A stretch of DNA of 64,000 nucleotides from Macrostomum lignano (Eukaryota). The notes below the pieces were generated by a model. It was not told where the DNA came from. It did not search any database and saw nothing but the letters and a program-made list of their open reading frames with translations. Positions 18,901 to 56,900 of this stretch are shown here, in pieces; within the stretch, counting starts at the first letter, position 1, and each line of letters begins with the position of its first letter. The translations under genes and the position numbers were made by a program. The DNA is taken from positions 316,303 through 380,302 of the forward strand of contig NIVC01000302.1 of the NCBI GenBank assembly GCA_002269645.1, written 5' to 3'.

Positions 18901-19916
18901 GCACTGAGAGAGAGACAGGTAGATTAGAGAGGCAGCACTGAGAGAGAGACAGGTAGATTAGAGGCAGCACTGAGAGAGAGACAGGTAGATTAGAGGCAGC
19001 ACTGAGAGAGAGACAGGTAGATTAGAGAGGCAGCACTGAGAGAGAGACAGGTAGATTAGAGGCAGCACTGAGAGAGAGACAGGTAGATTAGAGAGGCAGC
19101 ACTGAGAGAGAGACAGGTAGATTAGAGAGGCAGCACTGAGAGAGAGACAGGTAGATTAGAGAGGCAGCACTGAGAGAGAGATACAGGTAGATTAGAGAGA
19201 AGCTGCACTGAGAGAGAGACAGGTAGATTAGAGAGGCAGCACTGAGAGAGAGACAGGTAGATTAGAGAAGCAGCATTAAGAGAGAGAGGCAGGTAGATTA
19301 GAGAGGCTGCACTGAGAGAGAGAGAGAGAGGCCAGGTAGATTAGAGAGGCTGCACTGAGAGAGAGGCAGGTAGATTAGAGAAGCTGTACTGAGAGAGAGA
19401 GGCCAGGTAGATTAGAGAGGCCGCACGAAAAGAAAAAGGAAAATAAGAGGCCACATGGACAATTAAATTTCAAATATAACAGCTGAAACAGTCCTGAGAA
19501 GAGGGAGATCGCCAGATCGGTGAAATAGATACAAAGAGGTCATGCAGAAGAGATAATGAATAGGCAGTCAAACAGAAAATGCATGTTTAGGAAGCCACCC
19601 AGGCATCCTCATGGTTCAGTTCCCCTTGCTTCGCACAAAAGATACACAGCACTACAGTAGTCAGTTCTGTCTGAAATACTCACTTTAACTGATCCGAAAA
19701 CAAAACAATTTTATCTGACTGCAGCTTCAGATCGTTAATCCTTTCCCGCAAATCTTTCAGGGTCCAAGAGAAGGACTTTTCGTCTTCTGCTGGCGCCTCG
19801 AATCGTTGATTGCTCATGTAGATAAGCGCCAATGACCAGATGGCCAGACAGACAAAGATGAAATGCTTCCCAGTGAACAGCCTGAGTCGCATTGTATTAC
19901 AGCTGCAACTCATCAT
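12264..19916 (-). CDS. FUT8: Alpha-(1,6)-fucosyltransferase (core fucosyltransferase), ~589 aa
   Basis: Exons 19916-19684, 17680-17025, 14567-14317, 13639-13286, 12539-12264; all GT-AG and phase-consistent. N-terminal TM anchor, [31 protein letters not shown]|[51 protein letters not shown] and a C-terminal SH3-like region. Confidence 0.95.
12690..13210. repeat. Minisatellite, 16-bp unit (gtgtgaccggggacag), in FUT8 intron 4
   Basis: Tandem repetition; spurious 16-aa periodic ORFs. Confidence 0.95.
13862..14270. repeat. Minisatellite, 25-bp unit (atctgacccgatctgctcatactca), in FUT8 intron 3
   Basis: About 16 tandem copies, preceded by a degenerate gaggtcattc repeat at ~13665-13800. Confidence 0.95.
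14750..15680. repeat. Minisatellite, 35-bp unit (caagtgaacatctacctgtgaagagtgtgaataat), in FUT8 intron 2
   Basis: About 26 tandem copies. Confidence 0.97.
15863..15945. repeat. (GA)n microsatellite
   Basis: Interrupted GA dinucleotide run. Confidence 0.95.
16404..16935. repeat. Minisatellite, 24-bp unit (gaagagaggggtcagatagacatg), in FUT8 intron 2
   Basis: About 21 copies; source of the spurious EERGQIDM ORFs. Confidence 0.97.
17818..19425. repeat. Minisatellite, 32-36 bp unit (gagagagacaggtagattagagaggcagcact), in FUT8 intron 1
   Basis: About 47 tandem copies. Confidence 0.97.
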
Positions 19917-25396: not shown

Positions 25397-28300
25397 TGTA
25401 ATGAAGTCAAGTCGCTTATTCTGGAGTAAACTCAGTTGAGGCAAAACCCTCCACGCTCTGTTTATTTTATAGGCCAAGGGGCACGGTGGCCCGCGCATGT
25501 ACATTACCGTACGTACTGCTAGCTAAGCTTACTAAACAAGCTCCACCCCTACCACGCGGCCCCACCCCATAAGTCATGACACTTTTCCCCTCTCAGAAGA
25601 AGTCCGCTCCCTATCAATCACAGCTCCCGAATTTCGAGTAGGTCAGCTTCTCAGGTGGCCGTCGCCGCGTACAGGCTGCAGTCCGCAGGGCGCGTCTGGC
25701 GGCTCCGGCTCCGGGTGCTCCGCGCCGGTCCCGGTCGAGTCCGCAGCTTCAGCTGGCTTGGTCCCGGCTGCTGGACCGTCAGGTTCGTCGCTCTCGACTC
25801 GCCGGCCCCGCAGTTGGTCGGCATGACGGCGCCAGGTCAGGCCGTCGCTTGTTTCGACTCGGAAGCTCAGCGGCCCAGTCTGCTCGAGAACTTTTGCTGG
25901 TTGCCAGGCCGCCGCATTAGGCCGGTAGTCCCAGGCCTCCGACCACGGCTCCTCTGGCAGCTCCCGCGACCGCCGGTCGTGCTGTCGTTTCTGGGTAGAT
26001 TGCTCCCGCAGTACTCGATCCCGGGCTGACGGCCGCAGCAGGTCCATTCGAGTCCGGAGCTGCCGCTTCAGGAAGAGCTCCGCTGGTGTCCGACCGGTCG
26101 TTGGGTGCGGGCTAGCTCGATAGCCCAGCAGTCAGTTGCACAGCCGGATGTCGAGGTCCGGCTGACTGCTCCGTGACGCCTCCATGGCCATCTTGAACGA
26201 CTTCACCAGCCGTTCCACCAGTCCGTTGGTCTTGGCGTGATATGGACTGCTTCTTGTGTGGCGAATTCCATTTGCTTTGCAGAAATCGCTAAATCCTTGA
26301 CTGATACCAGTTCTCTCGGCAGGCCCCATTGTGCAAACAACACTCGCAGCTTGCGAACCAGCTCGGCTGATTCGAGTGTTGACACGGCCTCCACATGCGG
26401 CCACTTTGAGTGCGCGTCGACTACGAGGAGAAACTGGCGGCCTCGAACCGGCCCGGCAAAGTCAACGTGGATGCGGTCCCAGGGCTGGTCTGGCCACACC
26501 CAGGGGTGCAGTGGAGCCAGCACCGGATGCAACTTAACGGATTGGCAGGCTTGGCAGCTGCTGGCAACCGACTCGATGTCAGCATCCATTCCTGGCCACC
26601 AGACGAAGGTTCTGGCGACACTTTTCATCCGGGCCATGCCGAAATGTTCCACGTGTAACTCGCGCAGAACTCCAGGTCGCAACGCTTCCGGAACCAGTAC
26701 GCGAGTTCCCCAGATCACGCAGCCGTCTTCCACGCTTAGTTCTAGTCGACGACGAAAGTAGGGCTCGAGCCGCGGCGGAACCGACTCTGGCCAGCCAGTC
26801 ATTATCATCCGGAGAACATCTCGAAGCTCGTCATCTCGCCTCGTTGCTGCCGCTACATCCGCCGCCGTCAATGGGAACTCGCCCGTCAGCTGACAGAACC
26901 GATCGTCGTCGTCTGGGCTGTTGTCCTTCATCTGCAGGGGCAAGCGAGACAGGCCGTCTGCGTTGCTGTGCTGAGCAGTCTTGCGGAACCGGATGCTGTA
27001 GCTGTACCCTGACAGCAGCAGTGCCCATCTCTGAAGTCGCCCTGCTGCAGTCGGGGAGATGCCAACCTTCGGTCCGAAAATCGTCGTCAACGGCTGATGA
27101 TCCGTAATTATCGTGAATCTCCAGCCGAACAGGTACTGGTGGAACCGCTTGATAGCAAACACAATGGCGAGGGCTTCTTTCTCAATTTGCGAGTAATTTC
27201 GCTCCGCTGCTGACAGCGTCCTTGAAGCAAAAGTCACCGGCCGTTCCGAGCCGTCCTCCATCGTGTGGGACAGCACCGTGCCGATGCCGACCGATGAAGC
27301 ATCCGCGGCCACCACCACTGGAAGCTGCTCGTTGAAATGCGTCAGCACGCTGTCCGAACTCAGTTCTTGCTTAAGATTGTCCCAGGCTCGGTCCTCCGTC
27401 TCAGCCCACCGCCAGTCCGTCGCCTTCCTCAACAGTTGATACAGAGGAGCAGCGATCGTGGAGAAGTCCTTGACATGTCGAGCATAGTAGTTTGCGAGGC
27501 CCAAGAATGATCGCAGCTCTGATACTGTCACTGGCTTCGGGCTGTTGACTATTGCTTCCACCTTCTGAGGCAGCTTCTTGACTCCGTCCTTGCTCAGCAA
27601 CGAGCCCAGGTATTCGACTTCTCCTTGCAGAAATTTGCACTTGATTCGCTTCAACCGCAAGCTCGCCGCTCTCAGCCTGGTCAGTACCTCGCGAAGCGCT
27701 GCTAGGTGTTCACTCATTGACGGACCGGAGACTAGGATGTCATCAATGCGGCAACAGACTCCCGGCACGCCCTTCAAAAGTGTTTCCATCAGCCTCTGGC
27801 AAATCGCAGGAGTCGAAATGACGCCAAATGGCAACCGGAGGTACTCGAAAAGCCCTTTATGCGTGTTGATGGTCGTCAGCTTGCAGCTCTCTTCGTCGAG
27901 TGGAAACTGAAGATAACATTGTGACAGATCGAGTTTTGAGAACAGCTGACCCTGTCCCACCTGCTCGTAAAGCTCTTCAGGCGTAGGCAGCGGGTACTGG
28001 TCGATGTGGAGCTGAGGGTTCAACGTCAGTTTATAGTCGCCGCACAGTCGGACTGAGCCGTCCGCCTTGAGTACCGGAACCACTGGCGTACCCTTTGTTG
28101 AGCATGTCCTGGAGCTCGAGCTCCAGCTTGTCCCGCACTGCGAATGGCACGGGTCTGGCCTTGCAGAATCGAGGCTGTGCGTCACTTTTAAGTCTCAGTG
28201 CGACTGTCTGATCCTTCAACTGCCCCAGGCTCTCGTCGAAAACATCAGCGAACTCCTCCAGCATCTGGTCGAGAGGCCCGCTGTTCTGCGCCGGCGCCTG

Positions 28301-29637
28301 GCTGATCTGGTTGGCAAACAACTGAGTCCAGTTGAGTCGCACTTTTTCCAGCCAATTGCGTCCTAGCAATGGGCAGGCTCCGGTCTGACTGGTGACCACC
28401 AGCGGCAGCTTATGATGCTGTCTTCCGTCGTAGTTGACCATGACCTCGGCTGTTCCCTTGACTTGTATTGGCTCGCCCGTCCAGGTCCGGAGTCGCAGGC
28501 GTGTTGGTGTCAGCTGAGGTCGGCCGAGCTGCTTCCACAACGACTCTGATACGAGGCTGACGCAGGCACTGGTGTCCAGCTGCATGGTGAGGGGCTGGTC
28601 ATTCACCAGCAGGCTTACGCTGATCTTCTTGGCCGATGCAGTGACTTGCGAAATCCGGCCTGTTGCTGCTTCCTCCTCCTCTTCCGTTTGCATTGCGTGC
28701 GCTGGTCCGTTCTCTGGCCGTCCGGCTTTCGTTGTGCTGGAGGCTTTCTTGGCTGAGCGGCAAACTTTCTGCAGGTGTCCAAATTTCCCGCAGTTGTGGC
28801 ACTTTGCGGTCCTGAAGTGGCACTGTGGCAGGCTGCCGACAGGTGGCCTTTGAATCCGCACCTGTAGCACGCCTTCGAGTCTGGCGCTACCTGCTGGATT
28901 GAGCTGACCTCTGAGCTCGATTTCCACTGCTCAGTTTCCGACTTTGCAATCTCCGCCGCGAGGGCAATTTTCTTGGCCGCATCCAGCGTGAGCTTCTCCT
29001 CCATCAGGAGTCGCTGCTGGGTCCGCTGGTCTCGAAGACTGCAGACGAAACAGTCTCGGAGAGCTTCTTCTCGAAACCCCTCGAACTCGCACGAATCGGC
29101 CAGATTCCGCAGCGCAGCCAGAAATTGAGCAGCCGTCTCTCCGTCCTTTTGTGCTCGCTTGTAGAACTTGAACCGTTCAGCGATTACTGGCTTCTTCGGT
29201 TTGAAGTACTTTTGAAGGTGCTCGGTGAGGGCGCTGTATTGCAGATCTGTTGGCTTGGTCGGACTGCAGAGATCCCGCAGGACTGCGTAGCATCGTTCGC
29301 CAATCAATGTCAGAAACACTGCCTTCTTCTTGTCGTCGCCTTCTATGCCGTTTGCAAGCATGTAAGAGTCCATTCGCTCTTGATAGGCGTCCCAATCTTT
29401 GCCTTCTTCGTAAGGCTCTAGTTGTCCAACTGAAGCCATTCTCGTCGCCAATTGTAATGAAGTCAAGTCGCTTATTCTGGAGTAAACTCAGTTGAGGCAA
29501 AACCCTCCACGCTCTATATATATTATAGGCCAAGGGGCACGGTGGCCCGCGCATGTACATTAACGTACGTACTGCTAAAAAGGCTTACTAAACAAGCTCC
29601 ACCCCTACCATGCGGCCCCACCCCATAAGTCATGACA
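25397..29637 (-). mobile_element. Ty3/Gypsy LTR retrotransposon (Mag-like), defective
   Basis: LTRs 25397-25581 and 29453-29637 (TG...CA, ~185 bp, several differences); 5-bp TSD GCATC; PBS TGGCGACGAG next to the 5' LTR (complementary to a tRNA-Ser(GCT)-type 3' end); PPT gagaggggaaaag; gag with CCHC knuckles, protease LDTSAC, RT YIDD-like CRIDD, RNase H DASSVGIG, integrase; frameshifts near 28830 and 28090 and a deletion at the integrase LVSDNG motif. Confidence 0.95.
26203..29439 (-). pseudogene. Gypsy gag-pol, frameshifted
   Basis: Gag ATG at 29439 (MASVGQLEPYEEG); protease, RT, RNase H and integrase spread over three frames (28615-29466, 28031-28927, 26203-28185); the integrase C-terminal part continues in another frame down to ~25643. 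Confidence 0.88.
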
Positions 29638-34330: not shown

Positions 34331-34724
34331 CCATTACCTACAGTTAAAACTCTAACCCGTTCAGTAATTGGCTATCGCCATGTTCTAAGTGAATTCCAAA
34401 TCCTGGCTCACCCTCCTCCCCAGCATTCTCGTCGTCGTAGTCGCTTCCATGTTCGAGCTCGTCGGCGAATGCAACTGATCCTCGGCTCGCCTTGTGGCGT
34501 CTCTTTGGCGCGTCCGGCCTCGTTGACGCCTGCTCCATCATCTGACGCTGCGTGACGCTGCACAAATATGCAATCGCCGTTCTTCAGACCCTTTCGAGTG
34601 TTGGAAAGGAATATAGAATTAAAATTATAGTAGTTGTAATAGTAGTAGTGCTCTTTTACCTTGGGGTTGCGATAGGGGCCTCGCGGCCTATTCGCGGCGC
34701 CTGCGCCCCCCGTCAGTAGTAAGT

Positions 34725-34976
<252 letters not shown>

Positions 34977-34977
<1 letters not shown>

Positions 34978-35739: not shown

Positions 35740-35971
35740 AAAGTGAACTCAGACAAGCCGTGTTAATCTTTATGTGACACACGAAATTTATCAGAATCCA
35801 CCAGATGTAGCTCTTAGCTATGCAGTTTCAAAGATAGAATCTTAACCGATTTTCTGGCATTGCAATTTACTGTTTCAAGAAATATGATTTTCTGTGACAA
35901 ACATAATATTGTCAGTTTGAGACTTTTATTGAGATCAAAGTTTGGCAGTCTTCTCAGTCCGATGAGAATCA

Positions 35972-38588
35972 TCAGTCGTCATCCTCTTCTCCGCGAGGCA
36001 TGCCCTTGCCCTTGCCCTTGCTCTTGCCCTCGGAGCCGCGCTTTTTGTTGAGCCTGCAATATTTGGGGGGCAGCGTGGTTCAGTATGGTTCAGTATGGTT
36101 CAGTATGTTTCAGTATGGTTCAGTATGGTTCAGCATGGTTCAGTATGTTTCAGTATGGTTCAGTATGGTTCAGCATGGTTCAGTATGGTTCAAAATGGTT
36201 CAGTATGGTTCAGTATGGTTCAGTATGGTTCAGTATGGCTCATTTGATGGAGATGTAGGGTTTACTCACACAAGGAGATGTAGGGTTTACTCACACAAGG
36301 CTGTAGTTGATGGAGATGTAGGGTTTACTCACACAAAGGCTGTAGTTGATGGAGATGCAGGGTTTACTCACACAAGGCTGTAGTTGATGGAGATGCAGGG
36401 TTTACTCACACAAGGCTGTAGTTGATGGAGATGCAGGGTTTACTCACACAAAGGCTGTAGTTGATGGAGATGCAGGGTTTACTCACACAAAGGCTGTAGT
36501 TGATGGAGATGCAGGGTTTACTCACACAAGGCTGTAGTTGATGGAGATGTAGGGTTTACTCACACAAGGCTGTAGTTGATGGAGATGCAGGGTTTACTCA
36601 CACAAGGCTGTAGTTGATGGAGATGCAGGGTTTACTCACACAAGGCTGTAGTTGATGGAGATGCAGGGTTTACTCACACAAGGCTGTAGTTGATGGAGAT
36701 GTAGGGTTTACTCACACAAGGCTGTAGTTGATGGAGATGTAGGGTTTACTCACACAAGGCTGTAGTTGATGGAGATGCAGGGTTTACTCACACAAGGCTG
36801 TAGTTGATGGAGATGTAGGGCTTACTCACACAAGGCTGTAGTTGATGGAGATGTAGGGTTTACTCACACAAGGCTGTATAGTTGATGGAGATGTAGGGTT
36901 TACTCACACAAAGGCTGTAGTTGATGGAGATGCAGGGTTTACTCACACAAGGCTGTAGTTGATGGAGATGCAGGGTTTACTCACACAAGGCTGTATAGTT
37001 GATGGAGATGTAGGGTTTACTCACACAAAGGCTGTAGTTGATGGAGATGCAGGGTTTACTCACACAAGGCTGTAGTTGATGGAGATGCAGGGTTTACTCA
37101 CACAAAGGCTGTAGTTGATGGAGATGCAGGGTTTACTCACACAAGGCTGTAGTTGATGGAGATGTAGGGTTTACTCACACAAGGCTGTAGTTGATGGAGA
37201 TGTAGGGTTTACTCACACAAGGCTGTAGTTGATGGAGATGTAGGGTTTACTCACACAAGGCTGTATAGTTGATGGAGATGTAGGGTTTACTCACACAAGG
37301 CTGTAGTTGATGGAGATGTAGGGTTTACTCACACAAGGCTGTATAGTTGATGGAGATGTAGGGTTTACTCACACAAGGCTGTAGTTGATGGAGATGTAGG
37401 GTTTACTCACACGAGGCTGTATTTGATGGAGATGTAGGGTTTACTCACACAAGGCTGTAGTTGATGGAGATGTAGGGTTTACTCACACGAGGCTGTATTT
37501 GATGGAGATGTAGGGCTCCGGGCAGCAATCGTAGTAGGTTTCGACCCTCTTGGCGGTGGCTCTGGCCACGTCCCAACCGGCCAGAGGCTCAAAATCGGCG
37601 ATATTGAAGGGGCTGGAGCTCAGCGTCGTGTTCAGCAAGAGTCCGCTGTACACCCAGCTGCCCAGCACCGGGCGGCAGCTCATCGACTGGTTTCGCAGAC
37701 GGTCGCAGGGAGCCCGCAGCCTGGCCGGCAGTACGTAGATGACGTCAGAGCTGCTCATGGCGACCACTCGGACTGGGGAGACCCGGTCCGGTATGTAGTT
37801 CCCACTGAGGTGGTCGGGTGGCGGAGGGAATACTTTGTAATGATGGAGCAGAGCGGGCAGATGGAAGCTTTATCTTAGAAGCCTGTCACGAGACACTTAC
37901 GCATGGAAAGGTCGAACATCCGGAATCCACAGCAGATCGGAGGGCAGGGCGATCTGGCTCAGACCACCGAATTCGGCCGGGTCCCAGCTGAGTCTCGGGT
38001 CCTTCCAGAACTGCGGAGTGGCGATTGAGAATAAGAGAGTCTCCCACGTTTTCAGGCCCGAGAATCTCTGCCAGCTCGTCCGCTACCGAAGGGCTACCGG
38101 GCGAGCAACCATCCACCTGCTGGACTCTTCGGAGGGGGACCGCGCTGCGGACACCTCTGTGTCCCGGTTTCTCCATCAGCAACCCCTCAACACGAAACCT
38201 TCAATCGTCCTGGGCCCCCACCTACGCTCGAGTGTGAAGAGAATTCTCTCACCATCTGGATCCACACGTCCATCTCAGCAGACGATTCCTTCAGTGACGC
38301 CACTCGCAGCAGAGACAGGCCCAGAGACAAGTCCACTGTCTGGCTTCCGTTGCCGGGAGCGATAGGCCGAGCGATGGAGCCAGTTTTGCCCAACCGCCTC
38401 AGCAGGTAGCTCGCAAGTCGGTCTTCATCGGATTGGCCTAAGGCGATGGCATGACAAAGCAACAATGAAGTTTGAATTCAAACTGCTCAGAAGCATAAAA
38501 TAGTTACGACAAACATTTAAGCTAGATCACCTTGCACCAGACAGGTGGACGCGGCCAGCAGCAGCAGGAGGGCAAGAGAATTCTTCAT
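35972..38588 (-). CDS. Acetylcholine-binding-protein-like secreted Cys-loop ligand-binding domain (250 aa, no TM helices)
   Basis: Exons 38588-38531, 38437-38253, 38010-37901, 37804-37487, 36053-35972, phase-consistent; signal peptide; DVWIQM|FWKDPRLSWDP, WIPDV, GSWVYSG, YYDCCPEPY; stop after a short charged tail and AATAAA ~42 nt downstream (35925-35930). Confidence 0.85.
36076..36240. repeat. 10-bp tandem repeat (cagtatggtt)
   Basis: About 16 copies in the AChBP-like intron 4. Confidence 0.95.
36241..37515. repeat. 38-bp minisatellite made of the exon 4 end plus 5' splice site of the AChBP-like gene, ~33 copies
   Basis: Sense-strand unit ccctacatctccatcaactacagccttgt|gtgagtaaa equals the last 29 nt of exon 4 plus the first 9 nt of the intron. 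Confidence 0.95.
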
Positions 38589-39274
38589 GACCTTCTTTTG
38601 GTCGAAAATGATGTTGAACTTCTTGCCTGTAAAACAGGCTCGCATTTATGCACGTCTGATGTAAACAAACCGGACCTCCCAGGTGTCACAGAATATCACC
38701 ATCGCTAGAGAACGGCTTCGCCAGCTTTTCATGTTGGAATTTTCCAGTTTATTTACCGAATTTCGGCTTTGAGCGACTTATTTTAGATTTTGACGATTTT
38801 AATCAGCCCAGGGACCGCAGCTGCTGTCAATCAACTTATTGTTTATAACCAGATTTTACGGTTAAGGGCTTGTTCTGACTACTTGCATGACTGCAGGTAA
38901 CTCAGCATCACCTGCTTAGCTTTGCTGATGTGAAAAGCATAAATTGACCCAATATTACACTTACATGTAGGCTCTGATTGCTCAAAACTTTTACTGTATT
39001 TCACTTTATCTTTAGGAATTCCAGAATCTGATGGAAAATTTGTGGTCTTTTAAATGAATAACATTGAACATTCTAATTACTATCTAAACCTATCTTTTTC
39101 AGCCGAGAAAATGAACCAGCAAGAAAAATTGAACTTTTTCCTCCACAAATTGAAATTTGGCAGTTCAGCCGCTGCTGCAGCGGGGCTTGGGAGGTGCTGG
39201 CGCGGACCCAGCTACAGCCTAAACATTTGATCAGCAAAAAGCTCGCAAACTAAGACGGATTGTCTGTTCAATCG

Positions 39275-40852
39275 GCCCCATCGCATTTCAAACACTGAAT
39301 CCATTTTCTGTTCAATCATCTGCATTGCATTTCAAACACTGAATCCATTTTCTGTTCAATCGGCCCCATCGCATTTCAAACACTGATCCATTTTCTGTTC
39401 AATCATCTGCATTGCATTTCAAACACTGATCCATTTTCTGTTCAATCATCTGCATTGCATTTCAAACACTGATCCATTTTCTGTTCAATCATCTGCATTG
39501 CATTTCAAACACATCATTTTCTGTTCAATCATCTGCATTGTATTTCAAACACTGATCCATTTTCTGTTCAATCATCTGCATTGCATTTCAAACACTGATC
39601 CATTTTCTGTTCAATCATCTGCATTGCATTTCAAACACTGATCCATTTTCTGTTCAATCGGCCCCATCGCATTTCAAACACTGATCCATTTTCTGTTCAA
39701 TCATCTGCATTGCATTTCAAACACTGATCCATTTTCTGTTCAATCATCTGCATTGCATTTCAAACACTGAATCCATTTTCTGTTCAATCATCTGCATTGC
39801 ATTTCAAACACATCATTTTCTGTTCAATCATCTCCATTGCATTTCAAACACATCATTTTCTGTTCAATCATCTCCATTGCATTCAAACACATCATTTTCT
39901 ATTCAATCATCTCCATTGCATTTCAAACACATCATTTTCTGTTCAATCATCTGCATTGTATTTCAAACACATCATTTTCTGTTCAATCGGCTTCATTGCA
40001 TTTCAAACACTGAATCCATTTTCTGTTCAATCGGCCCCATCGCATTTCAAACACTGAATCCATTTTCTGTTCAATCGGCTTCATTGCATTTCAAACACTG
40101 ATCCATTTTCTGTTCAATCATCTGCATTGCATTTCAAACACTGAATCCATTTTCTGTTCAATCATCTGCATTGCATTCAAACACATCATTTTCTGTTCAA
40201 TCATCTGCATTGCATTTCAAACACATCATTTTCTGTTCAATCGGCTTCATTGCATTTCAAACACTGAATCCATTTTCTGTTCAATCGGCCCCATCGCATT
40301 TCAAACACTGATCCATTTTCTGTTCAATCGGCTTCATTGCATTTCAAACACTGATCCATTTTCTGTTCAATCATCTCCATTGCATTTCAAACACTGAATC
40401 CATTTTCTGTTCAATCATCTGCATTGCATTTCAAACACTGATCCATTTTCTGTTCAATCATCTGCATTGCATTTCAAACACTGAATCCATTTTCTGTTCA
40501 ATCATCTCCATTGCATTTCAAACACTGATCCATTTTCTGTTCAATCATCTCCATTGCATTTCAAACACTGATCCATTTTCTGTTCAATCATCTGCATTGC
40601 ATTTCAAACACTGAATCCATTTTCTGTTCAATCATCTGCATTGCATTTCAAACACATCATTTTCTGTTCAATCATCTCCATTGCATTTCAAACACATCAT
40701 TTTCTGTTCAATCATCTCCATTGCATTCAAACACATCATTTTCTGTTCAATCATCTCCATTGCATTTCAAACACATCATTTTCTGTTCAATCATCTGCAT
40801 TGTATTTCAAACACATCATTTTCTGTTCAATCGGCTCCATTGCATTTCAAAC
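39275..40852. repeat. Minisatellite, 42-44 bp unit (cattgcatttcaaacactgatccattttctgttcaatcatctg), ~37 copies
   Basis: Tandem array between MED20 and the AChBP-like ATG, possibly within a 5' UTR intron (acceptor-like ttttacag near 38630). Confidence 0.97.
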
Positions 40853-41489: not shown

Positions 41490-43160
41490 TCAGCGTCCAA
41501 TTAGCTGACTTGGCGGTCCAGGCAGGGGGGCGCGGCCCCAGGACTGCTGCTGCTGCATGGAGACGGGCACTGCAGCATCGGCTGCGGAGGATGGCGCAAC
41601 AGCTGATCTCATCTGCTGTCTGGAAGAGCCCAGCTGATAGGCGAGCAGCAGGTATTGCTGTACAGTGACGGGATAGGTGTAGTCGATCGGTCCGGTAGCG
41701 GCCTGGGCCTGCAGGTGAGCCTGCAGAGCTTCGTTCGGATGTTCAACAGCGAAGGCGCGGTCGGGGAAAACTCCGCTGAAAAACTCTTTCAACAATGGCC
41801 AGCCGAATTGCAGCCGGTTGCAGGGCCGGTACTCCGCTTCGACAAATACGCCTTTGACGCTGTTCGACTGCAGAGGTTGGTGGTTAACAGCATGTTGCCG
41901 GTTGTGCAATCATGTTGGATAGCAACTTTGTTGTGAGGGATCTGAGAGCGATCCCAGATAGGGGCACTGGAGGAGACTCTAGATGCAGCTGTTAGATTAG
42001 AGGGCGATTCTAGATGCAGCTGTTGGATTAGAGGGCGATTCTAGATGCAGCTGTTGGATTAGAGGGCGATTCTAGATGCAGCTGTTGGATTAGAGGGCGA
42101 TTCTAGATGCAGCTGTTGGATTAGAGGGCGATTCTAGATGCAGCTGTTGGATTAGAGGGCGATTCTAGATGCAGCTGTTGGATTAGAGGGCGATTCTTGA
42201 TGCAGCTGTTGTTGGATTAGAGGGCGATTCTTGATGCAGCTGTTGTTGGATTAGAGGGCGATTCTTGATGCAGCTGTTGTTGGATTAGAGGGCGATTCTT
42301 GATGCAGCTGTTGTTGGATTAGAGGGCGATTCTTGATGCAGCTGTTGGATTAGAGGGCGATTCTTGATGCAGCTGTTGGATTAGAGGGCAGCTAGATGCA
42401 GCTGTTGCTGGATTAGAGGGCGATTCTAGATGCAGCTGTTGGATTAGAGGGCAGCTAGATGCAGCTGTTGCTGGATTAGAGGGCGATTCTAGATGCAGCT
42501 GTTGGATTAGAGGGCGATTCTAGATGCAGCTGTTGGATTAGAGGGCGATTCTAGATGCAGCTGCTAGACTAAGGGGTGATTCTAGATTAAGGGATGATTC
42601 TAAATGGAGAACCAGAGGCTATCCAAGCTGCATGCATCAGAAGATCAGGGAGAACACATTATAATTAAACGCAATCTAATAGAGCCACTCGCCTGTCCGA
42701 ACACGGCCGTGGCCAGCCGGACAGTGAAATCGGCCAGCCGGTATTTCGGACCCCGGCAGTGCACAGCCTGGCCGGGCTTGGCCTGGTACAGGGCGCGCAG
42801 CTGGCCAAGCAGCAGGCCGAACATGGAGTCGGCGCTGACTAGCGGGCCGGCCGCGGCTTCAATTGAAGATCCCGACGGCAAAATATAGGACGACACCGGC
42901 GCCTCCGATGAGGCCACAACGTGAAGAGTGCGCGGCTGCGGCTGCTGCTGGGAGGCCGGCTGCTGCTGTTGCTGCTGCTGCTGTACAGGCGTGTACACCT
43001 CCATGTCCAGACTGAACTGTCCGGACTCGCGCTCAGCGCCTAGGCGTTCTAGACGGCCAGACAGATCCTCGATTAGTTGCTGTCCGGACAGAGCTGGGCC
43101 GCTTGACAACGGCTGCTCACCGGCTGAGCCGGACTCAATGAAAGCCACAACAGTGACGCC
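41490..43160 (-). CDS. MED20: Mediator complex subunit 20
   Basis: Exons 43160-42693 and 41867-41490; (M)GVTVV..LERLGAE..GQFSLDMEVY, GPKYRLADFTVRL, KGVFVEAEYRPC; intron has a GC donor (CAG|gcgagt); start Met not found in cis. Confidence 0.85.
41975..42600. repeat. Minisatellite, 31-34 bp unit (gattagagggcgattctagatgcagctgttg), in the MED20 intron
   Basis: About 19 copies. Confidence 0.97.
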
Positions 43161-44356: not shown

Positions 44357-44572
44357 CTACATAGGCGGCGGGGCGGCATCGCTGATGGGGCTGATGATGC
44401 TGAGCAGAGTGACTGGCGGATGGCCGGGCTCAGAGCCTTGCATGTAGCCCAGCACCATGACTAGCGGGATGTAGCCGTAGTAGAAGGCCAGTCGGCACAG
44501 GCCAACCAGGTTCATGATGCGCTTAGCGATGGTCTGAGTGACTGACATGTCCGGGTTCGAATTTCTGAGCAT
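44357..44572 (-). CDS. TOMM7: Mitochondrial import receptor subunit TOM7
   Basis: AFYYGYIPLVMVLGYMQGSEPGHPPVTLLSII matches the Tom7 motif xGFIPLVIYLGxxxGxxPGxP; start at 44572 or 44548. Confidence 0.85.
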   Translation of the reverse strand: MLRNSNPDMSVTQTIAKRIMNLVGLCRLAFYYGYIPLVMVLGYMQGSEPGHPPVTLLSIISPISDAAPPPM

Positions 44573-44664: not shown

Positions 44665-45115
44665 TCCCTAAAGTTACCCCGGCCAGCAGGACAAAATCCC
44701 TAATGGGATAAGATCCCTGATGAGATAAGATCCCTAATGGGATGAGATCCCTAGTGAGATAAAATCCCTAATGGGATAAGATCCCTAATGAGATAAGCCC
44801 TAATGGGATAAGATCCCTAATGAGATTAATGGGATAAGATCCCTAATGAGATTAATGGGATAAGATCCCTAATGAGATAAGATCCATAATTGAATGAGAT
44901 CCCTAATGAGATAGGATCTCTAATGGGATAAGATCCCTAATGGGATAAGATCCCTAATTGGATAAGATCTCTAATGGGATAAGATCCCTAATGGGATAAG
45001 ATCCCTAATTGGATAAGATCCCCAATGAGATAAGATTCCTAATGGGATAAGATCCCTAATGGGATGAGATCCCTAATGAGGTAAGATCCCCAATGGATAA
45101 GATACATAATTAGAC
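44665..45115. repeat. Minisatellite, 17-bp unit (taatgggataagatccc)
   Basis: Tandem array upstream of TOMM7. Confidence 0.95.
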
Positions 45116-46175: not shown

Positions 46176-49100
46176 TCAATCCGCATCGGCGCCGCTATTT
46201 GCCGCATTCCCGTCTTCGCCGTTCAGCTGCAGTCGTCGTCGCCGACTAGCCGTCGCCTGGGCCAACTTTACCGACAGCGCCGCTAGCGCCACATTGAAGT
46301 CCTCGTCAGTCACGTAGCGCCTACCACCGGCCAGCCTGGCGTTGAGCTTGGCCTCCTCAACCAGCTGGCTGAGCTCGGCGCCGCTCAGTCCCCGGCACCT
46401 GCCATCGTCGGCAATCCTAGCCAGCGTAGACATCCGGTCGACACCGTCGCCGAATGGCGGCTTAGTTCGAGTCAGCGCGGCTAGAACTTCGAGACGTTCG
46501 GCGGAAGACTGCGGCTTTCGCACGACGATAGTCTTACCCAGGCGGCCCGGCCGGCGGATGGCCGCGTCAATCAAGTCCGGCCGGTTGGTGGCCGCCATGA
46601 CGAACACCTGGCCGCGGCACTCCAGCCCGTCTAATAGAGTCAGCAGCTGGTTAACCACCTGAGGTTTGTTTGGTGATAGCTTGAAGCAGGTTTATTGTAT
46701 CAACCCGACGATGAAATTAAATTAGCCTTGTGGCTTTCGGCGTTCCACCAATTAAAGACGACATCGTCTTTTCTTTTGCTCACTGCGCCAGCCAATAGCA
46801 ACCCTGGCCCACCCCAATCTTTCCTACCCATCCATTTGCTCACTGCGCCAGCCAATAGCAACCCTGGCCCACCCCAATCTTTCCTACCCATCCATTTGCT
46901 CACTGCGCCAGCCAATAGCAACCCTGGCCCACCCCCATCGTTCCTACCCATCCATTTGCTCACTGCGCCAGCCAATAGCAGCCCTGGACCACCCCCATCT
47001 TTCCCTACCTTGCTGCTTGCCAGCCAATCATAATTAAGAAAACTCACCGTAGAATGAGCCCCTGTGTCGCTGCCCCGATGGGCGCAAACCGCGTCGATCT
47101 CATCGAAGAACACTAGACAGGGCTGGCAGGCTCTGGCATTCTCGAACAGCACGCGCAGCGCCCGTTCGCTTTCGCCCAGATATTTATCGAATATCTCCGG
47201 CCCTTTCACGCTCATAAAGTTCAATCCGGCTTCGTTGCTCAACGCTTTGGCCAGTAAAGTTTTGCCACAGCCGGGCTCGCCAACTAGTAGCAGACCGTCG
47301 GCTTTTTGGCCAATAGCCTCAGCGCCTTCTGGGTCCAGCACCAGCGACATGAATGTCTGGCGGATCTCGCGCTTAGCTTCGAAACAGCCGCCAATATCCT
47401 CCCAGCTGACGTCCGGGATGCGAACAAAGTGCGGCTTCTGCTTGGCCAACGGCAGCACCCGATCGAAGGCAGACTGGAGGCGAGCCGAGTCTAATTCGAG
47501 AGCAGCTGGCTCGGTGCCAGGTGAGGCTGCAGCGGCTGGTTAGGGCGAGGGAGGGGTGGGGGCGGCTCTGATAGGCTTTGTGTGACTGGTTCGGTTTTTA
47601 AGGGGCTTTTATCCCGATATTCAGCACGCGAATGGAAGAATCGCCCTTTACTCTCAATCTCTCATTGAATAATCGCCCTCTACTCTCATTGGAGAATCTC
47701 CCTCTGCTCTCATTGAAGAATCGCCCTCTACTCTCATTGGAGAATCTCCCTCTGCTCTCATTGAAGAATCGCCCTCTACTCTCATTGGAGAATCGCCCTC
47801 TGCTCTCATTGAAGAATCGCCCTCTACTCTCATTGATGAATCGACCTCTGTTTTCATTGGAGAATCGCCCTTTACTCTCTTTGAAGAATCGCGCTCTACT
47901 CTCATTGATGAATCGCCCTCTACTCTCTTTGAAGAATCGCCCTCTACTCTCTTTGAAGAATCGCCCTCTACTCTCTTTGAAGAATCGCCCTCTATTCTCT
48001 TTGAAGAATCGCCCTCTACTCTCTTTGAAGAATCGCCCTCTACTCTCATTGATGAATCGACCTCTACTCTCTTTGAAGAATCGCCCTTTACTCTCTTTGA
48101 AGAATCGCCCTCTACTCTCTTTGAAGAATCGCGCTCTACTCTCTTTGAAGAATCGCCCTCTACTCTCTTTGAAGAATCGCCCTCTACTCTCTTTGAAGAA
48201 TCGCGCTCTACTCTCTTTGAAGAATCGCCCTCTACTCTAATTGATGAATCGCGTTCTACTCTCATTGGAGAATCGCCCTCTAATCTCATAGGAGAATCGA
48301 CATCTACTCCCACTGAAGAATTGCCCTCTAATCTCATTGGAGAATCGTCCTCTACTCTCCTATAATTTAGCACAATGGACTCACAAAGAGAATCGCCAAA
48401 GTCTCGCATCAGCTTGGCGATCCGCTGGTAGCCGCTATCTTCGCCGTCAACGCCGCCGCCACCGCTGTGAGGCAGTCGCAGGGAAACGTGCGCATCTTCC
48501 ACCGCCTCCCGGACCAGCTGTTTCAAATCGCCAACATTGAATCCAACAGTTCTCAGAGAGCAGGATTCCAACAAATCGGAGCCGCTGCAGTCCAGCAGTC
48601 GGACCCCGGCCGAAGCGAACAGCTGACTGAGACAGGCGGCGCGTTGGCGCCGATCCAACAAGCCGAGGCGGACAACTTTGCGGAAGGCGCACAACAGACC
48701 GTCGTCCATGTCGGTCAGGGCGGAGCTGGACTCGCCAATTAACAATACGCGGGTGCCGACGAACTCGGGCAGACAGTTGAGCAGAGCTCGGCGGCAGGCG
48801 GCCAGAGGCTTGTTGGCCTCGGAGACGGTGGACAGTCGGTCGACGCTGTGCAGCAACAGCAGGCAGGGCTGGGCGGCAGTGGCTTTGGACAGCACAGCTT
48901 GCCACATCGCTGCCGCGGCTTCGGCAGTTTTGCCAGCGAACCAGTCTAGGTGCAGCTCGCATAGGGGCATGCCTGAGAGCTGGTTAAAATTTCAGTGAAG
49001 CTGGGGATCAATGGGGAATAGTGCTCAGATAAAGCTGGGGATCAATGGGGAATAGTGCTCAGATAAAGCTGGGGATCAATGGAGAATAGTGCTCAGATAA

Positions 49101-52100
49101 AGCTGGGGATCAATGGGAAATAGTGCTCAGATAAAACTGGGGATCAATGGAGAATAGTGCTCAGATAAAGCTGGGGATCAATGGGGAATAGTGCTCAGAT
49201 AAAACTGGGGATCAATGGAGAATAGTGCTCAGATAAAGCTGGGGATCAATGGGGAATAGTGCTCAGATAAAGCTGGCGATCAATGGGGAATAGTGCTCAG
49301 ATAAAGCTGGTGATCAATGGGGAATAGTGCTCAGATAAAACTGGGGATCAATGGGGAATAGTGCTCAGATAAAGCTGGGGATCAATGGAGAATAGTGCTC
49401 AGATAAAACTGAGGATCAATGGAGAACAGTGCTCAGATAAAACTGGGGATCAATGGAGAATAGTGCTCAGATAAAACTGAGGATCAATGGAGAATAGTGC
49501 TCAGATAAAACTGAGGATCAATGGAGAATAGTGCTCAGATAAAGCTAGCAATTGATGGAAGATCTATGCCACAATAGAAAACACAATCATCAGACGATTT
49601 TTTGAAAGACTTACAGCGGCTACGGCCCGAACCAGAGTGGTTTTTCCGCTCTTTGGCGAGCCGAGCACGAAGCAGCCCTGCAGCTCTTCGGTGACCAGCG
49701 AGGGCGGGCAGGACAGGGCGGCCACTGCTACGCGACACAGGGCCTGCGGGTGAGCAATGAGGTGGCGGAGGTGAACTTAAGCTAGGTGTTTAAAAGAAGA
49801 GTTGTTGGAAGACTAATTCTGGCCTTTTGGGGTGGTTGAGGCACCATTTCTGCGACTATTTTATAGCTGATGCGCGATTTCTGTGGGGATAATTCATGGG
49901 ATATTTCCATGGGGATAATTGATGGGGCGATTTCCATGGGGAAAAAATGGGAAATTTCCATTGGGATAATTAATGAGCGATTCCTATGGAGATAATTAAT
50001 GGGAAAATCCCATGAGGATAACTGATGGGAAATTTCCATGCGGATATTTATGGGGGAGATTTTCCATGGGGATAATTGATGGGAGATTTCCATGGGGACA
50101 ATTGATGGGAGATTTCCGTTGGGATACTTGATTGGAGATTTCAGTTGGGACAATAGACGGGCAATTTTACGGGAATTTCCATGGGGATAATTGATAGAAG
50201 ATTTCTATGGATAGAAAGGGTTAACTTCTAGACTGGAGCAGCTTAAGGAAGATTTCTAACATCTAAACCGATAAGATTAGGGAAGATCTGATAATTATTA
50301 ACCGCCCAATCATCGACGCAGCCCCAGCGCTAAGAACTTGCCATCAGCTCGTCGTGGAACAGGTCCTTGAACAGCGCCTCCGAATTCAACTGCGGCACGC
50401 TAAATTCCAGCTCCATCTCGTCCACCAGCCGAGTGGCCAGGCTTCTCCGTTCAACTGACGAAACCGCCGCCGCCGCTCCTGCTGGCTCGTCGGATTTGCG
50501 CAGACGACGCCGACGCTTCGACGGTGGAGGCAGCGGTGTAGCCGACGATGACGCGATGTCGTCGCCGTTGTCCACCGGCTCCAGATCGTCGTGTACATCG
50601 CCGGTAGTTGCTATCGAAGTCGGCGTGGCGTGATTGCCGGAGGCGGCTGCTGCGGTTTCGCGAATTCTGCGCAGACTGGCTTCGTTGAGACTGCTGCGGT
50701 AGTCCTGGGGAAAACAGCAGAAAAATAGATTTGTTCTTTAATTTCTTCCGCTTAATCATCAGCTTTAAAACACAGTAGGAATACCAAAACAAGAGAGAAT
50801 CCCCCCTCAGCTTAGTCGCCAGCCCTTCGGACCGTCTAGATATTCAACAATTCTGCCAGAGGGTCGAATTTTTCCAATAAGCGCCAGTGTATTCGCCCCT
50901 GTGCAGCGTGCACCAATCAGCACTGCGCCTCAGTGCGGCCTCCAAAGTTCACCAGCACGTCGACCACAGGTGTCTGCACTAGAGATGCCATCGCCTTCCC
51001 AGGGGTGCCATCGCTATCCCAGGGGCGCCATCGCTATCCCAGGGGCGCCATCGCTATCCCAGGGGCGCCATCGCTATCCCAATGGCGCCATCGCTATCCC
51101 CAAGAGCGCCATCGCTATCCCCAAGAGCGCCATCGCTATCCCCAAGAGCGCCATAGCTATCCCCAAGAGCGCCATCGCTATCCCCAAGAGCGCCATCGCT
51201 ATCCCAAGGGGCGCCATCGCTATCCCCAAGAGCGCCATCGCTATCCCAATGGCATCATTGCTATCCCCAAGAGCGCCATCGCTATCCCCAAGAGCGCCAT
51301 CGCTATCCCAATGGCATCATTGCTATCCCCAAGAGCGCCATCGCTATCCCCAAGAGCGCCATCGCTATCCCCAAGAGCGCCATCGCTATCCCAAGGGGCG
51401 CCATCGCTATCCCACTGGCGCCGTTTCCAGAGCGCTTCTCCAAGGGCACCAAAGCTATTGCGATGGGGTAGCCATATGATTTTCCCAGTCCTACATCTCC
51501 AGGTAGATCTCATAGGCAAAATTTTCGAAGTGAAATCGGTAAAACTAATCAACAGAATGGGTCAACCAGCGCATTAGAAAAAAGAACCTTTTGACTCGAA
51601 TAGATTCGTGAGAAAGTCTAATTTTTGCATCGAAAAATTTAACCGCATGAACCGCAAGAAGTAGAACTAGACGCTACAGGCTAGTAAGACATCGTTAACT
51701 ATCACAGCATAAAGTTAAGTAATCCGCGTACTAACCGCGATCAACCCTGCTTAACTTAACAGCTCTGAACTTGGAATTTCGTCGTTAAGAACTCACCGGC
51801 TCTTCAATATATTCGCCGCCAGAGAAGTCCATATACCAGTCTCCGCCATCATCGCCATTATTATTATCGCAGCCGGAGCCGGGCAGACGCCAGCCCCGTT
51901 GCTTAGCAACCTGAACAAATTTCAATGCTTTAATCGCGTCCTTGCGCCAGTGCTTCTCTTTGCGACGGTGAAATTCGCTGGACAAGAAAATTACGCGCAA
52001 TTGCATAAAAAGATGCCAATAAATCATACATGCTACTGTCATTAGTAGCGCAGTTGCGCAAAGTTAAAATAAATAAATATATTTATATATTGTTAAAATT

Positions 52101-53932: not shown

Positions 53933-56900
53933 CTAAAGATTTCGATAATTAAAGACCGTCTGCTCGGCCGCGGCAAAGCAGTCTAAGAAGGCGGCCTCCT
54001 CCAACCCGAACCGGGCATACTGATGCACGAACGCTTTGGCGGCGAACATTGACCAGGCTCTGGCTATGGACCGGTCCAGCGTGTCCGCTCCGGTTGCGCA
54101 ATTGGACACCAGGGCGCAGGCGCGCTCGTAGCCTCGATAGGGCCGGCCAGTGCGGCACACTGTCAGCCGGTCAGACTGCGGCAGCCAGGCTGGGTGCAGC
54201 TCCGGCAGTAGCAGGTGCTGCTCCCAGTCGGCTGGGCACAGGCTGTCGGCGCCTGGAGAATCAGTATTGGAATTGAGCAGAGCTAACTTTTTTATGGGTT
54301 AATTTTTTGCTGTTTAGAAGGGAAGGTTTGGGTAATCTTGGAATATCTGGGAGGGTGGCTGAGGATCTGGGGAAGTGATTGAGGATCTGAAAAGGTTTTT
54401 GAGGACTTAGGAAGAAGATTGGGGATCTGGGAAGGTGATTAAGGACTTAGGAAGGAGATTGGGGATCTGGGAAGGTGATTAAGGATCTAAGGTGATTGAG
54501 GATCTGGGAAGGTGATTGAGGATCTAGGAAGGTGATTGAGGATCTAGGAAGGTGATTGAGGATCTAGGAAGGTGATTAAGGATCTAAAAAGGTCTTTGAG
54601 GATCTGGGAAGGCGATTGAGGATCTGGGAAGATGATTGAGGATCTGGGGAGGTGATTGAGGATTTGGGAAGGTGATTGAGGATCTTGGAATGTTTTTGAG
54701 ATTTAGGAGAGCAATACCCGACAAAGGGGAGATCCGGCATCCCACACGTAGGCCAGCAACTCAAACCTACCAAGTCCGCGAAGCCACAGCCGGCTAGCAA
54801 AGCATCTCTGCCTGCCGGAGGCGGCTGTTAGAGCGGCATCCTGCCGCCAGTCGAGGCCCTCCTCAACGGCGGCGCCGGCCAGCAGCATCTGGCGCAGATG
54901 GCGCAGCAGACCCGGCCAAGCGAAGCCGGAGAACTCCTTGGCCCGCTCGGAAGCGTAGGGCAGGCAGCGCAGCTGCAGCAGCCGCAGGTCCGGATGCGGG
55001 CAGAGACTCGCCGCTATGCCGCCAAGCGCCGGGCCCTGAGCCGCCGCGGACTGGACACCGCAGGCTGGCTGCAGGATAGCTCCAAGCTGGTGGCCAATCA
55101 TCGCGTTGAGGTGGCCGACGTCGACGCGGGCTAGACCGAGGCGTCGTTCGCAGGCGTCCTGCAGGCGATCGTTTTCAAACAAAAGCAAAGCGTCACAGGC
55201 GGCAGTGAGGTGAGCTGTGGTCAGCACGCTGTTGTAGGCCTGGACAGAGACTTCGCCTCGGCTGTGCGGCCACACCAGGCCGGAGATCTGGCGGACAGGT
55301 TAAACAGCTGCGGCGTCATTGATTGCTGTTTAATAATCAACCAGATAGAGGCTGAATTTTTTTTACATTTCTAAGAAATTAACAACCTTCCACTGACATT
55401 TCTATAGAATCAACAATCTTCCGTCTGTCATTTCTATAGAGTCAACAGCCTTCCTATGGGCAGTTTTAAAGAATTATTAACTTTTCATTTCACATTTTAA
55501 TAAAAATCAACAACCTTCCATATGACATTTCTATAGAAACAACCACCTTCCATATGACATTTCTATGGAATCAACAATCTTCCATATGACATTTCTGTAG
55601 AATCAACAACCTTCTATATGACATTTCTGTAGAATCAACCACCTTCCATATGACATTTCTGTAGAATCAACAACCTTCTATATGACATTTCTGTAGAATC
55701 AACCACCTTCCATATGACATTTCTGTAGAATCAACAACCTTCTATATGACATTTCTGTAGAATCAACCACCTTCCATATGACATTTCTGTAGAATCAACC
55801 ACCTTCCATATGACATTTCTGTAGAATCAACCACCTTCCTTCTGACATTTCTGTAGCATCAACAACCTTCTGTCTGACATTTCTGTAGCATCAACAGCCT
55901 TACGCTATATTTTAAAATCAACATTTCGAACGATATGTCTATAAAATTCTATTACAACTGAAATCTTACGTCAGGCAGTTCTCTAAAGGACAACATCTCT
56001 GGTTCTACTTATTCCGAAAGCGATGATACGAAGACCAAATAATTACCAAATTAGCCTGAGGATACTCGTCTCGGACTTGTTCGCATACAAACGTGCCCAG
56101 CCCGGACCCGGTGCCGCCGGCCAGGCTCATTAACGCTAGGAAGCCGTCTAGACGATCGCTGGCTTCGGCCTGACGACGGACAATCTCGGACAGATTGGGC
56201 CAACATTTTGGGCCGTGGTGACGATAGCCCTGAAAGGCAAAATACGAGTAGATAATGGAAAATTCTGTTTTGCATAGAATTGTGCGCTATCCCTCCATTC
56301 CGTCTCAGATCTCCTTTATTCTTCTGTCCTAGAGGGTGTGCCGTCACTTCTATTCTTCGGTATTAGAGGGTGTGCTATCCTATTCTGTACTAGAGGGTGT
56401 GCTATCCTATTCTGTACTAGAGGGTATGCTATCCTATTCTGTACTAGAGGGTATGCTATCCTATTCAGTATTAGAGGGTGTGCTATCCTATTCTGTACTA
56501 GAGGGTATGCTATCCTATTCTGTACTAGAGGGTGTGCTATCCTATTCTGTATTAGAGGGTGTGCTATCCTATTCTGTACTAGAGGGTGTGCTATCCTATT
56601 CTGTATTAGAGGGTGTGCTATCCTATTCTGTACTAGAGGGTGTGCTATCCTATTCTGTATTAGAGGGTGTGCTATCCTATTCTGTACTAGAGGGTGTGCT
56701 ATCCTATTCTGTACTAGAGGGTGTGCTATCCTATTCTGTATTAGAGGGTGTGCTATCCTATTCTGTACTAGAGGGTATGCTATCCTATTCTGTACTAGAG
56801 GGTGTGCTATCCTATTCTGTATTAGAGGGTGTGCTATCCTATTCTGTACTAGAGGGTGTGCTATCCTATTCTGTATTAGAGGGTGTGCTATCCTATTCTG

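Follow-up and report, generated by a model that had tools for sequence, protein, structure and literature searches.

Acetylcholine-binding proteins (AChBPs) are standard structural surrogates for nicotinic acetylcholine receptors (nAChRs), and both their natural distribution and their function are poorly understood. They assemble as soluble pentamers and bind acetylcholine (ACh) at the subunit interfaces (work of Smit and Sixma, summarised in PMC3423370 and PMC4569296), and they have been reported from molluscs, from one annelid and, putatively, from one spider (PMC3423370, PMC4569296). Here we describe a gene of this type in a stretch of 64,000 nucleotides from Macrostomum lignano (contig NIVC01000302.1, positions 316,303 to 380,302), hereafter called the window. 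That its product is a soluble AChBP-like protein rather than a receptor subunit is well supported. The original prediction, made from the letters alone, had attributed the DNA to a probable flatworm, and M. lignano is one: window positions 48645-25972 are 100% identical to NIVC01000302.1 of assembly GCA_002269645.1.

Like the molluscan AChBPs (those of Lymnaea, Aplysia, Bulinus and Biomphalaria, and also the ACCBPs of Haliotis and Pinctada), the flatworm protein consists of a signal peptide and a single ligand-binding domain (LBD) that has the same fold, with no transmembrane part. It shares with them a loop C of the form YxCCPEPY, a hydrophilic Cys-loop of other than 13 residues and a short basic stretch (KKR, RERR or RKK) at the pre-M1 position, and its loop B is as in Aplysia. 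Its identity to the molluscan proteins is ~28-34%, similar to that among AChBPs (Table 2 of PMC3423370). Unlike them, it comes from the Platyhelminthes (Macrostomorpha), has a Phe in loop A, carries an N-glycosylation site in a 9-residue Cys-loop and ends in a longer tail of Lys, Gly and Asp that has an exon of its own. The AChBP of the annelid Capitella teleta is likewise a soluble LBD of a non-molluscan spiralian; in a Foldseek comparison its structures 4afg and 4b5d gave target-normalised template-modelling scores of 0.84-0.85, with only ~25% identity in the alignment. The Cys-loop of the Capitella protein is said to have been found shortened by McCormack et al. in 2010, and this protein reportedly lacks the aromatic residue of loop D, whereas the flatworm protein has a Trp there. 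The putative AChBP of the spider Cupiennius salei (CsAChBP, 246 amino acids; PMC4569296) resembles it in being LBD-only, mined from sequence data, atypical in its Cys-loop and poorly placed in phylogenies, but it belongs to an arthropod and has a Cys-loop of 16 residues, and genomic, paralog and cross-species support is available on the flatworm side. With the LBD of alpha7-like nAChRs, which gave the best full-length match (1e-23), the protein shares the aromatic box apart from the Tyr of loop A, the vicinal Cys pair and the introns flanking a 110-nt exon; unlike these receptors, it has neither M1-M4 nor an FPF Cys-loop and cannot form a channel.

The gene lies on the minus strand and consists of five exons of 58, 185, 110, 318 and 82 nt separated by GT-AG introns, as established by exact spliced reconstruction against the deposited protein. 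The spliced product, with its ATG at 38588 and its stop codon ending at 35972, is 250 amino acids long. Its features, in the order of transcription, are as follows.

38643..38645, minus strand: upstream in-frame ATG, start of the GenBank model (269 amino acids, PAA85864.1)
38531..38588, minus strand: exon 1, with the start codon (38588-38586) and the signal peptide MKNSLALLLLLAASTCLVQ(G); donor in phase 1
38253..38437, minus strand: exon 2, 185 nt, with the N-terminal helix, beta1-beta2 and the loop-D Trp (DVWIQM)
37901..38010, minus strand: exon 3, 110 nt, FWKDPRLSWDP...WIPDVRPFHA, including loop A
37487..37804, minus strand: exon 4, 318 nt, with loop E, the C-x9-C Cys-loop, loop B, loop F, loop C and beta10, to ...IKYSLV
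35972..36053, minus strand: exon 5, 82 nt, with the charged tail (L)NKKRGSEGKSKGKGKGMPRGEEDDD and the stop codon TGA (35974-35972)
35925..35930, minus strand: AATAAA polyadenylation signal, 42 nt past the stop codon and conserved in a paralog locus

No transmembrane exon was detected in the 64 kb. When the transmembrane regions of two membrane-spanning homologs and of alpha7, alpha1 and the glycine receptor (GlyR) were used as tblastn queries, nothing better than E ~0.5 was obtained. Profile hidden Markov models (HMMs) of pre-M1-M3 and of M4, built from 48 transmembrane-bearing relatives, were searched against all 2599 stop-to-stop segments of the window, and their transmembrane parts gave a best E of 0.66 and scores of at most 6.3 bits. 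The sole significant match was the end of exon 4, which is recognised through the beta10 residues that open the profile. A control LBD model of the same construction, built without Macrostomum sequences, recovered exons 2, 3 and 4 at 7e-7, 1e-13 and 5e-28, respectively. On the same strand, the window has nothing downstream of the gene but a Ty3/gypsy-like retroelement (25643-29466) and exons of FUT8 (16975-17676).

The same organisation is found at two homeologous loci of M. lignano (L004 and L005; 96% protein identity), which have an identical five-exon layout, a homologous terminal exon of 73 nt (LDKKRKGKDGKGKGRPRGEEDDD*) with an AATAAA, and their next annotated gene ~1.7 kb downstream on the opposite strand; an intact open reading frame (ORF) with canonical splice sites is present in at least three loci of this species. 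Among cDNA contigs drawn from samples SRR28338164-6 and ERR6349729, two intronless, RNA-derived contigs encode orthologs, referred to as sp2 (252 amino acids, 67% identity, tail NPKRNNDEEKRKGDKRRGDDQDDD) and sp3 (236 amino acids, 47% identity, tail NPIDGSERK). Both ORFs terminate directly past beta10, and in each contig a 3' untranslated region (3'UTR) comes next, one of which bears an AATAAA. The source species are presumably macrostomid flatworms, to judge from these identities, an exclusive clade with a bootstrap of 100 and consecutive run numbers. Exon 5 has a counterpart in the paralogs, and a homologous tail is encoded by the sp2 cDNA. The ratio of nonsynonymous to synonymous divergence (dN/dS) came to 0.20 with sp2, 0.42 with sp3 and 0.29 for the homeologs, dS exceeding 1 in the comparisons between species, and the truncated form is therefore maintained by purifying selection. 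The absence of TM1-4 claimed by the original prediction is thus upheld by blank tblastn and HMM searches, by homeologs with a short last exon and by cDNAs of two species that end alike; together with the purifying selection, these results also sustain its central claim of a secreted LBD-only protein of the AChBP type in place of a channel subunit.

The upstream ATG at which the GenBank model starts is probably not the true start codon. It directly precedes a pyrimidine-rich, acceptor-like site ('ttttacag'), and a start at 38645 would bury the signal peptide. The Met of exon 1 is also used by the paralogs and by the sp2 cDNA, in which an in-frame stop codon lies 6 codons upstream of it; because the paralog models and the orthologous cDNA begin at this MK... 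Met, with the sp2 stop just upstream, the 250-amino-acid form is the likelier product. The role of the acceptor-like site is putative. No spliced-leader sequence common to the cDNA contigs was seen at their 5' ends.

The protein opens with a signal peptide (MKNSLALLLLLAASTCLVQG), called from its hydrophobic N-terminus, and contains no hydrophobic segment past it. A Pfam scan returned Neur_chan_LBD (PF02931) alone (E = 3.1e-25, residues 42-228). Loop D has its Trp at residue 78 within DVWIQM, loop B (GSWVYSG) includes its Trp, and loop C (YYDCCPEPY) contains two Tyr and the vicinal Cys pair. The Cys-loop, C151-DRLRNQSMS-C161, is of the C-x9-C type, hydrophilic and without the FPF motif; three N-x-S/T sites are present (N49, N156 and N176). 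After beta10 (...IKYSLV) follows a tail of 25 residues, NKKRGSEGKSKGKGKGMPRGEEDDD, of which 8 are basic and 6 acidic. Two hallmarks of nAChR subunits, M1-M4 (Neur_chan_memb) and a 13-residue Cys-loop with FPF(D), are absent. Among solved structures, sequence comparison ranks closest Aplysia AChBP with its chimeras, chimeras of alpha7 and AChBP, and alpha7 itself (1e-26 to 1e-22; 1e-26 to 1e-19 with further AChBPs included), with which loops A, B, C and D align residue by residue. All the protein features named in the original prediction were found, namely the signal peptide, the full LBD with its loop B, C and D residues, the Phe in loop A and the C-x9-C loop, as was its 3' end, with a stop after 250 amino acids (TGA, 35974-35972), a charged tail and a polyadenylation signal (AATAAA, 35930-35925).

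An AlphaFold2 model of the monomer, computed from an alignment of 66 sequences, reached a mean predicted local distance difference test (pLDDT) of 91.8 and a predicted template-modelling score (pTM) of 0.83, and consists of an N-terminal helix and a ten-strand beta-sandwich, i.e. the LBD fold. Confidence is low only over the last ~20 residues (pLDDT about 60-65), and the charged tail is therefore probably disordered. Foldseek against the PDB retrieved the ectodomains of alpha7, alpha1 and alpha9 and AChBPs, including those of Capitella and Lymnaea, with alpha7 at rank 1 and target-normalised scores of 0.84-0.88 for isolated ectodomains and AChBPs.

The length of the Cys-loop was compared among relatives. 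A full scan of 1.84 billion representative proteins gave 3194 matches, and 163 LBD domains were extracted from the best 150 of these and from those hits of the first homology search that were not Macrostomum proteins. In 74 of them the LBD is followed by at least two transmembrane segments, and 60 of the 65 such domains that could be scored have a C-x13-C loop. Another 74 are LBD-only, with Cys-loops of 8-15 residues in the 64 scorable ones, mostly of 12 or fewer and in ten cases of exactly 9; three more have a single hydrophobic C-terminal segment. The named LBD-only relatives are molluscan, for example a 'soluble acetylcholine binding protein' of Pleurobranchaea and automatically named nAChR subunits of Saccostrea and Haliotis. 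The C-x9-C loop is therefore good evidence of a long evolution without a pore to gate. Two statements of the original prediction did not withstand this comparison: its 'unusually short' Cys-loop falls within the range of LBD-only relatives, the variability of loop length among AChBPs being already published (PMC4569296), and its charged tail has many parallels, short basic or acidic tails being common in LBD-only proteins.

Other relatives depart from these two architectures. Four LBD-only proteins (P0003, encoded by L003 from ERR6349729, P0025, P0034 and P0090), with Cys-loops of 8-11 residues and, for P0003 and P0025, 31-33% identity, have a single C-terminal hydrophobic segment after a stretch of small residues, e.g. 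...KSLVAASSSAAVTASACLALLVAAVGRALWI. These tails resemble a glycosylphosphatidylinositol (GPI)-anchor signal or a lone transmembrane anchor, and the proteins may be membrane-tethered and AChBP-like. Eight of the best database matches, predictions of 580-1215 amino acids (P0012-P0015, P0022, P0074, P0088 and P0094), contain 2-5 LBD matches and repeated transmembrane blocks; they are probably tandem nAChR genes fused by gene prediction.

We consider it likely that the gene encodes a secreted, glycosylated, LBD-only AChBP-like protein that forms a pentamer, binds ACh or related amines and serves as a buffer. By analogy with other LBDs, the protein would assemble into a pentameric ring after cleavage of its signal peptide, with inter-subunit pockets lined by the Phe of loop A, the Trp of loop B, the two Tyr and the vicinal disulfide of loop C and the Trp of loop D. 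Such pockets may bind acetylcholine or other quaternary or tertiary amines in the extracellular space, which would make the protein a soluble buffer or decoy, not a channel. Freed from coupling to a pore, the Cys-loop would have shrunk to its 9 hydrophilic residues with their N-glycosylation site, and the presumably disordered Lys/Gly/Asp tail would take the place of pre-M1/M1. Both ACh binding and pentamer formation are inferred from the known AChBPs.

Several points weigh against this reading. In loop A (WIPDVRPFH), the alignments place a Phe, which is aromatic and lacks a hydroxyl group, at the position of the Tyr of alpha7 and AChBPs. In sp3, the most distant ortholog (P0011, from L007 of SRR28338166), the loop-A residue is an Ile and both cysteines of the Cys-loop are replaced (PTDRLRNESRLG). 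The transcript evidence consists of cDNA of other species, not of M. lignano reads, and a minor isoform splicing to exons beyond the 64-kb window is conceivable. In a neighbour-joining tree of the 163 LBDs, the deeper nodes have bootstraps of 0-3 and the flatworm clade is not placed with the molluscan AChBPs. The sp3 protein retains the Trp of loops B and D and the CC of loop C. It is also an LBD of the Cys-loop family without the Cys-loop disulfide.

Since sp3 has lost the cysteines of the Cys-loop and the aromatic residue of loop A, the conserved ligand may not be ACh. It is a serious alternative, if less probable than the reading above, that the secreted LBD-only protein has a ligand or role other than ACh buffering, such as the binding of other amines, of dietary or algal toxins or, in the manner of the molluscan ACCBPs, of mineral or matrix, or a part in reproductive or adhesive secretion. 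Besides the exchange of the loop-A Tyr for Phe in M. lignano and for Ile in sp3 and the missing disulfide of sp3, this is favoured by the annelid nAChR-like channel Alpo4, which has the identical Phe/Trp/Tyr/Tyr/Trp box and is unresponsive to ACh (PMC10338036), by the non-synaptic nature of some molluscan family members, which form dodecahedra in the hemolymph or bind CaCO3 (PMC3423370), and by the physiological roles of AChBPs being described as still unclear (PMC4569296). However, four of the five residues that make up the aromatic box are the same as in ACh-binding AChBPs and alpha7, as is the vicinal Cys pair, loop B (GSWVYSG) is identical to that of Aplysia AChBP, and the box residues are conserved between M. 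lignano and sp2.

How an LBD-only gene of the preferred type arose in flatworms was approached through phylogeny and intron positions. Placement in a tree with AChBPs had been proposed as a check of the original prediction; in the neighbour-joining tree M. lignano, sp2 and sp3 form a clade with a bootstrap of 100, but a grouping with the molluscan AChBPs is without support, and published trees are equally poorly resolved (PMC3423370, PMC4569296). The intron map is more informative in detail. The signal-peptide intron (phase 1) is retained in the flatworm gene, exon 3 is the canonical 110-nt nAChR exon, and the introns flanking it (phases 0 and 2) occupy the same alignment columns as in the fish alpha5 gene used for comparison (exons 73/152/45/110/178/687/156). 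The intron between the 152- and 45-nt exons is lost, exon 2 (185 nt) being a fusion of the canonical 152(140)- and 45-nt nAChR exons. In contrast, two abalone LBD-only genes, the short forms of Haliotis (exons 46-55/134/155/364-370), have kept this intron and lost the one between the 45- and 110-nt exons. As the flatworm and abalone genes have lost different introns, their ancestor had both, as nAChR genes do. Intron 4 (phase 2) falls precisely at the junction of beta10 with the pre-M1-equivalent KKR, and none of the genes compared has an intron corresponding to it.

Both a single truncation, with an origin shared with the molluscan AChBPs, and two separate ones are compatible with these data. 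We tentatively raise the possibility that the macrostomid proteins derive from an independently truncated nAChR gene, belong to a much larger and largely unrecognised set of non-channel Cys-loop LBD proteins whose ligands and roles may reach beyond ACh buffering, or both; the lineage-specific intron at the LBD/pre-M1 boundary may then mark the cut point of such an independent truncation. In public data, the 163 closest LBD domains are LBD-only in roughly half of the cases, a few of these having hydrophobic tails like GPI signals. A search for transmembrane-bearing nAChRs of M. lignano with the nearest transmembrane-bearing relative (P0016) returned no Macrostomum proteins.

The intron map also bears on a very different view of the locus, namely that it represents the 5' portion of an ordinary nAChR subunit gene whose transmembrane exons lie beyond the retrotransposon or outside the window, the tail exon being alternative or mispredicted. 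Three intron positions and phases do match canonical nAChR genes, intron 4 is located exactly at the LBD/pre-M1 boundary, and a retroelement follows at a distance of 6 kb downstream. Nevertheless, no transmembrane-like exon occurs in any frame of the 64 kb, the next annotated gene at the paralog loci follows within 1.7 kb on the other strand, the cDNAs of two other species end after beta10 with a 3'UTR and a polyadenylation signal, and the Cys-loop has neither the FPF motif nor the 13-residue length of 60 of the 65 scorable transmembrane-bearing relatives. On these grounds this explanation was rejected as very improbable. A decaying receptor fragment truncated by minisatellite expansion or transposon insertion was likewise rejected and is the least credible alternative. 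Intron 4 does contain a 1.2-kb minisatellite that copies the exon end, and repeats and transposons abound in the region. However, at least three M. lignano loci have an intact ORF with canonical splice sites, dN/dS between species is 0.2-0.4 at dS above 1, and orthologous mRNAs are present in RNA-derived assemblies.

Two repeats occupy most of intron 4 of the AChBP-like gene.

36274..37515, minus strand: 38-bp minisatellite, ~32 copies with 96% matches, starting in exon 4 (its last 29 nt) and filling most of intron 4
36076..36242, minus strand: 10-bp microsatellite-like repeat TGGTTCAGTA, 16.7 copies, in intron 4 just upstream of the acceptor

Each unit of the minisatellite corresponds to the last 29 coding nucleotides of exon 4 followed by the splice donor, i.e. 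PYISINYSLV and then GTGAGTAAA, or, in nucleotides, ...CCCTACATCTCCATCAACTACAGCCTTGT joined to GTGAGTAAA, and the array thereby results in 33 tandem GTGAGTAA donors. It occurs nowhere else in the window and is shared by the paralog loci L004 and L005 (11073-11857), with 17-19 motif matches there against 33 in the window, whereas the 10-bp repeat is absent from the equivalent position of the paralogs, which have unique sequence instead. Because read-through or use of a later donor leads to an in-frame TGA immediately past ...SLV, the product of every splicing outcome is a soluble protein, whether or not it has the tail. The paralog-type INYSLV is found in most units, and IKYSLV at the exon end in the window and in a single internal unit. 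The pattern is suggestive of unequal exchange within the array, by which the final codons of exon 4 would be rewritten; such exchange would account for the K/N difference among the homeologs.

The retroelement ~6 kb downstream (25643-29466, minus strand) is of the Ty3/gypsy-like long terminal repeat (LTR) type, with long ORFs for gag, protease, reverse transcriptase, RNase H and an integrase zinc finger. The paralog loci appear to be without it at the corresponding place, and downstream homology resumes differently. An intact-looking ORF for a Tc1/mariner transposase of 424 amino acids, with a Sleeping-Beauty-like helix-turn-helix (HTH) and a DDE_3 domain, was found at 59328-60602 (minus strand), adjoined at 61005-61735 (plus strand) by an ORF that looks by eye like a mariner-type transposase and is apparently frameshifted. 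The window is unusually dense in long minisatellites, e.g. 43 bp x 38, 31 bp x 19 and (AGT)87; they lie at 39259-40852, 41978-42587, 34715-34977, 44696-45000, 16312-16931, 18524-18970, 47632-48240, 50901-51479 and 56336-58400, several of them inside introns of neighbouring genes, and the ~2-kb array at 56.3-58.4 kb yields artefactual ORFs of 700-800 amino acids in two frames. Genes for an AAA-ATPase (46176-48970), Tom7 (~44357-44569) and Med20 (~41490-43160) lie upstream on the minus strand, FUT8 (16975-17676) lies downstream, and tubulin-family exons are found at 54703-55275 and 58382-58765. None of the neighbouring genes is functionally linked to cholinergic signalling.

The exact 250-amino-acid sequence is present in UniParc as UPI0007A30767, and its 90% cluster consists of hypothetical proteins of M. 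lignano (PAA85864.1, i.e. BOX15_Mlig011179g1, PAA75741/PAA79548, PAA56211 and A0A1I8I0E5); the only database labels are hypothetical protein or 'Neur_chan_LBD domain-containing' protein. Full-text searches found neither a description of a flatworm AChBP nor papers mentioning the gene identifiers Mlig011179 and Mlig018664, and a survey of lophotrochozoan nAChRs mentions neither AChBPs nor flatworms. When named LBD-only proteins of further flatworms were sought with a profile, only mollusc and unnamed sequences were returned; this search depends on a word index and is as such no proof of absence. The suggestion that the protein may be undescribed thus holds for the literature searched, but not for the databases, where it is already deposited as PAA85864.1/UPI0007A30767.

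The gain is incremental, since the databases already contain the sequence under the label of a hypothetical protein and none of its features lies outside what is known for the type, and the finding is not surprising, as public data hold many LBD-only proteins; it should be of moderate interest to specialists of Cys-loop receptors and to the flatworm community. The gene extends the AChBP type to flatworms, the third spiralian phylum in which it is found. If the macrostomid proteins are such an independently truncated lineage within a larger set, 'AChBP' would stand for a solution reached repeatedly in evolution rather than for a single family. The intron map provides a concrete handle on the single or repeated origin of soluble LBD proteins. 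M. lignano is a transgenic flatworm model that is tractable by RNA interference, and it would therefore allow a genetic in vivo test of the role of a soluble ACh-binding protein.

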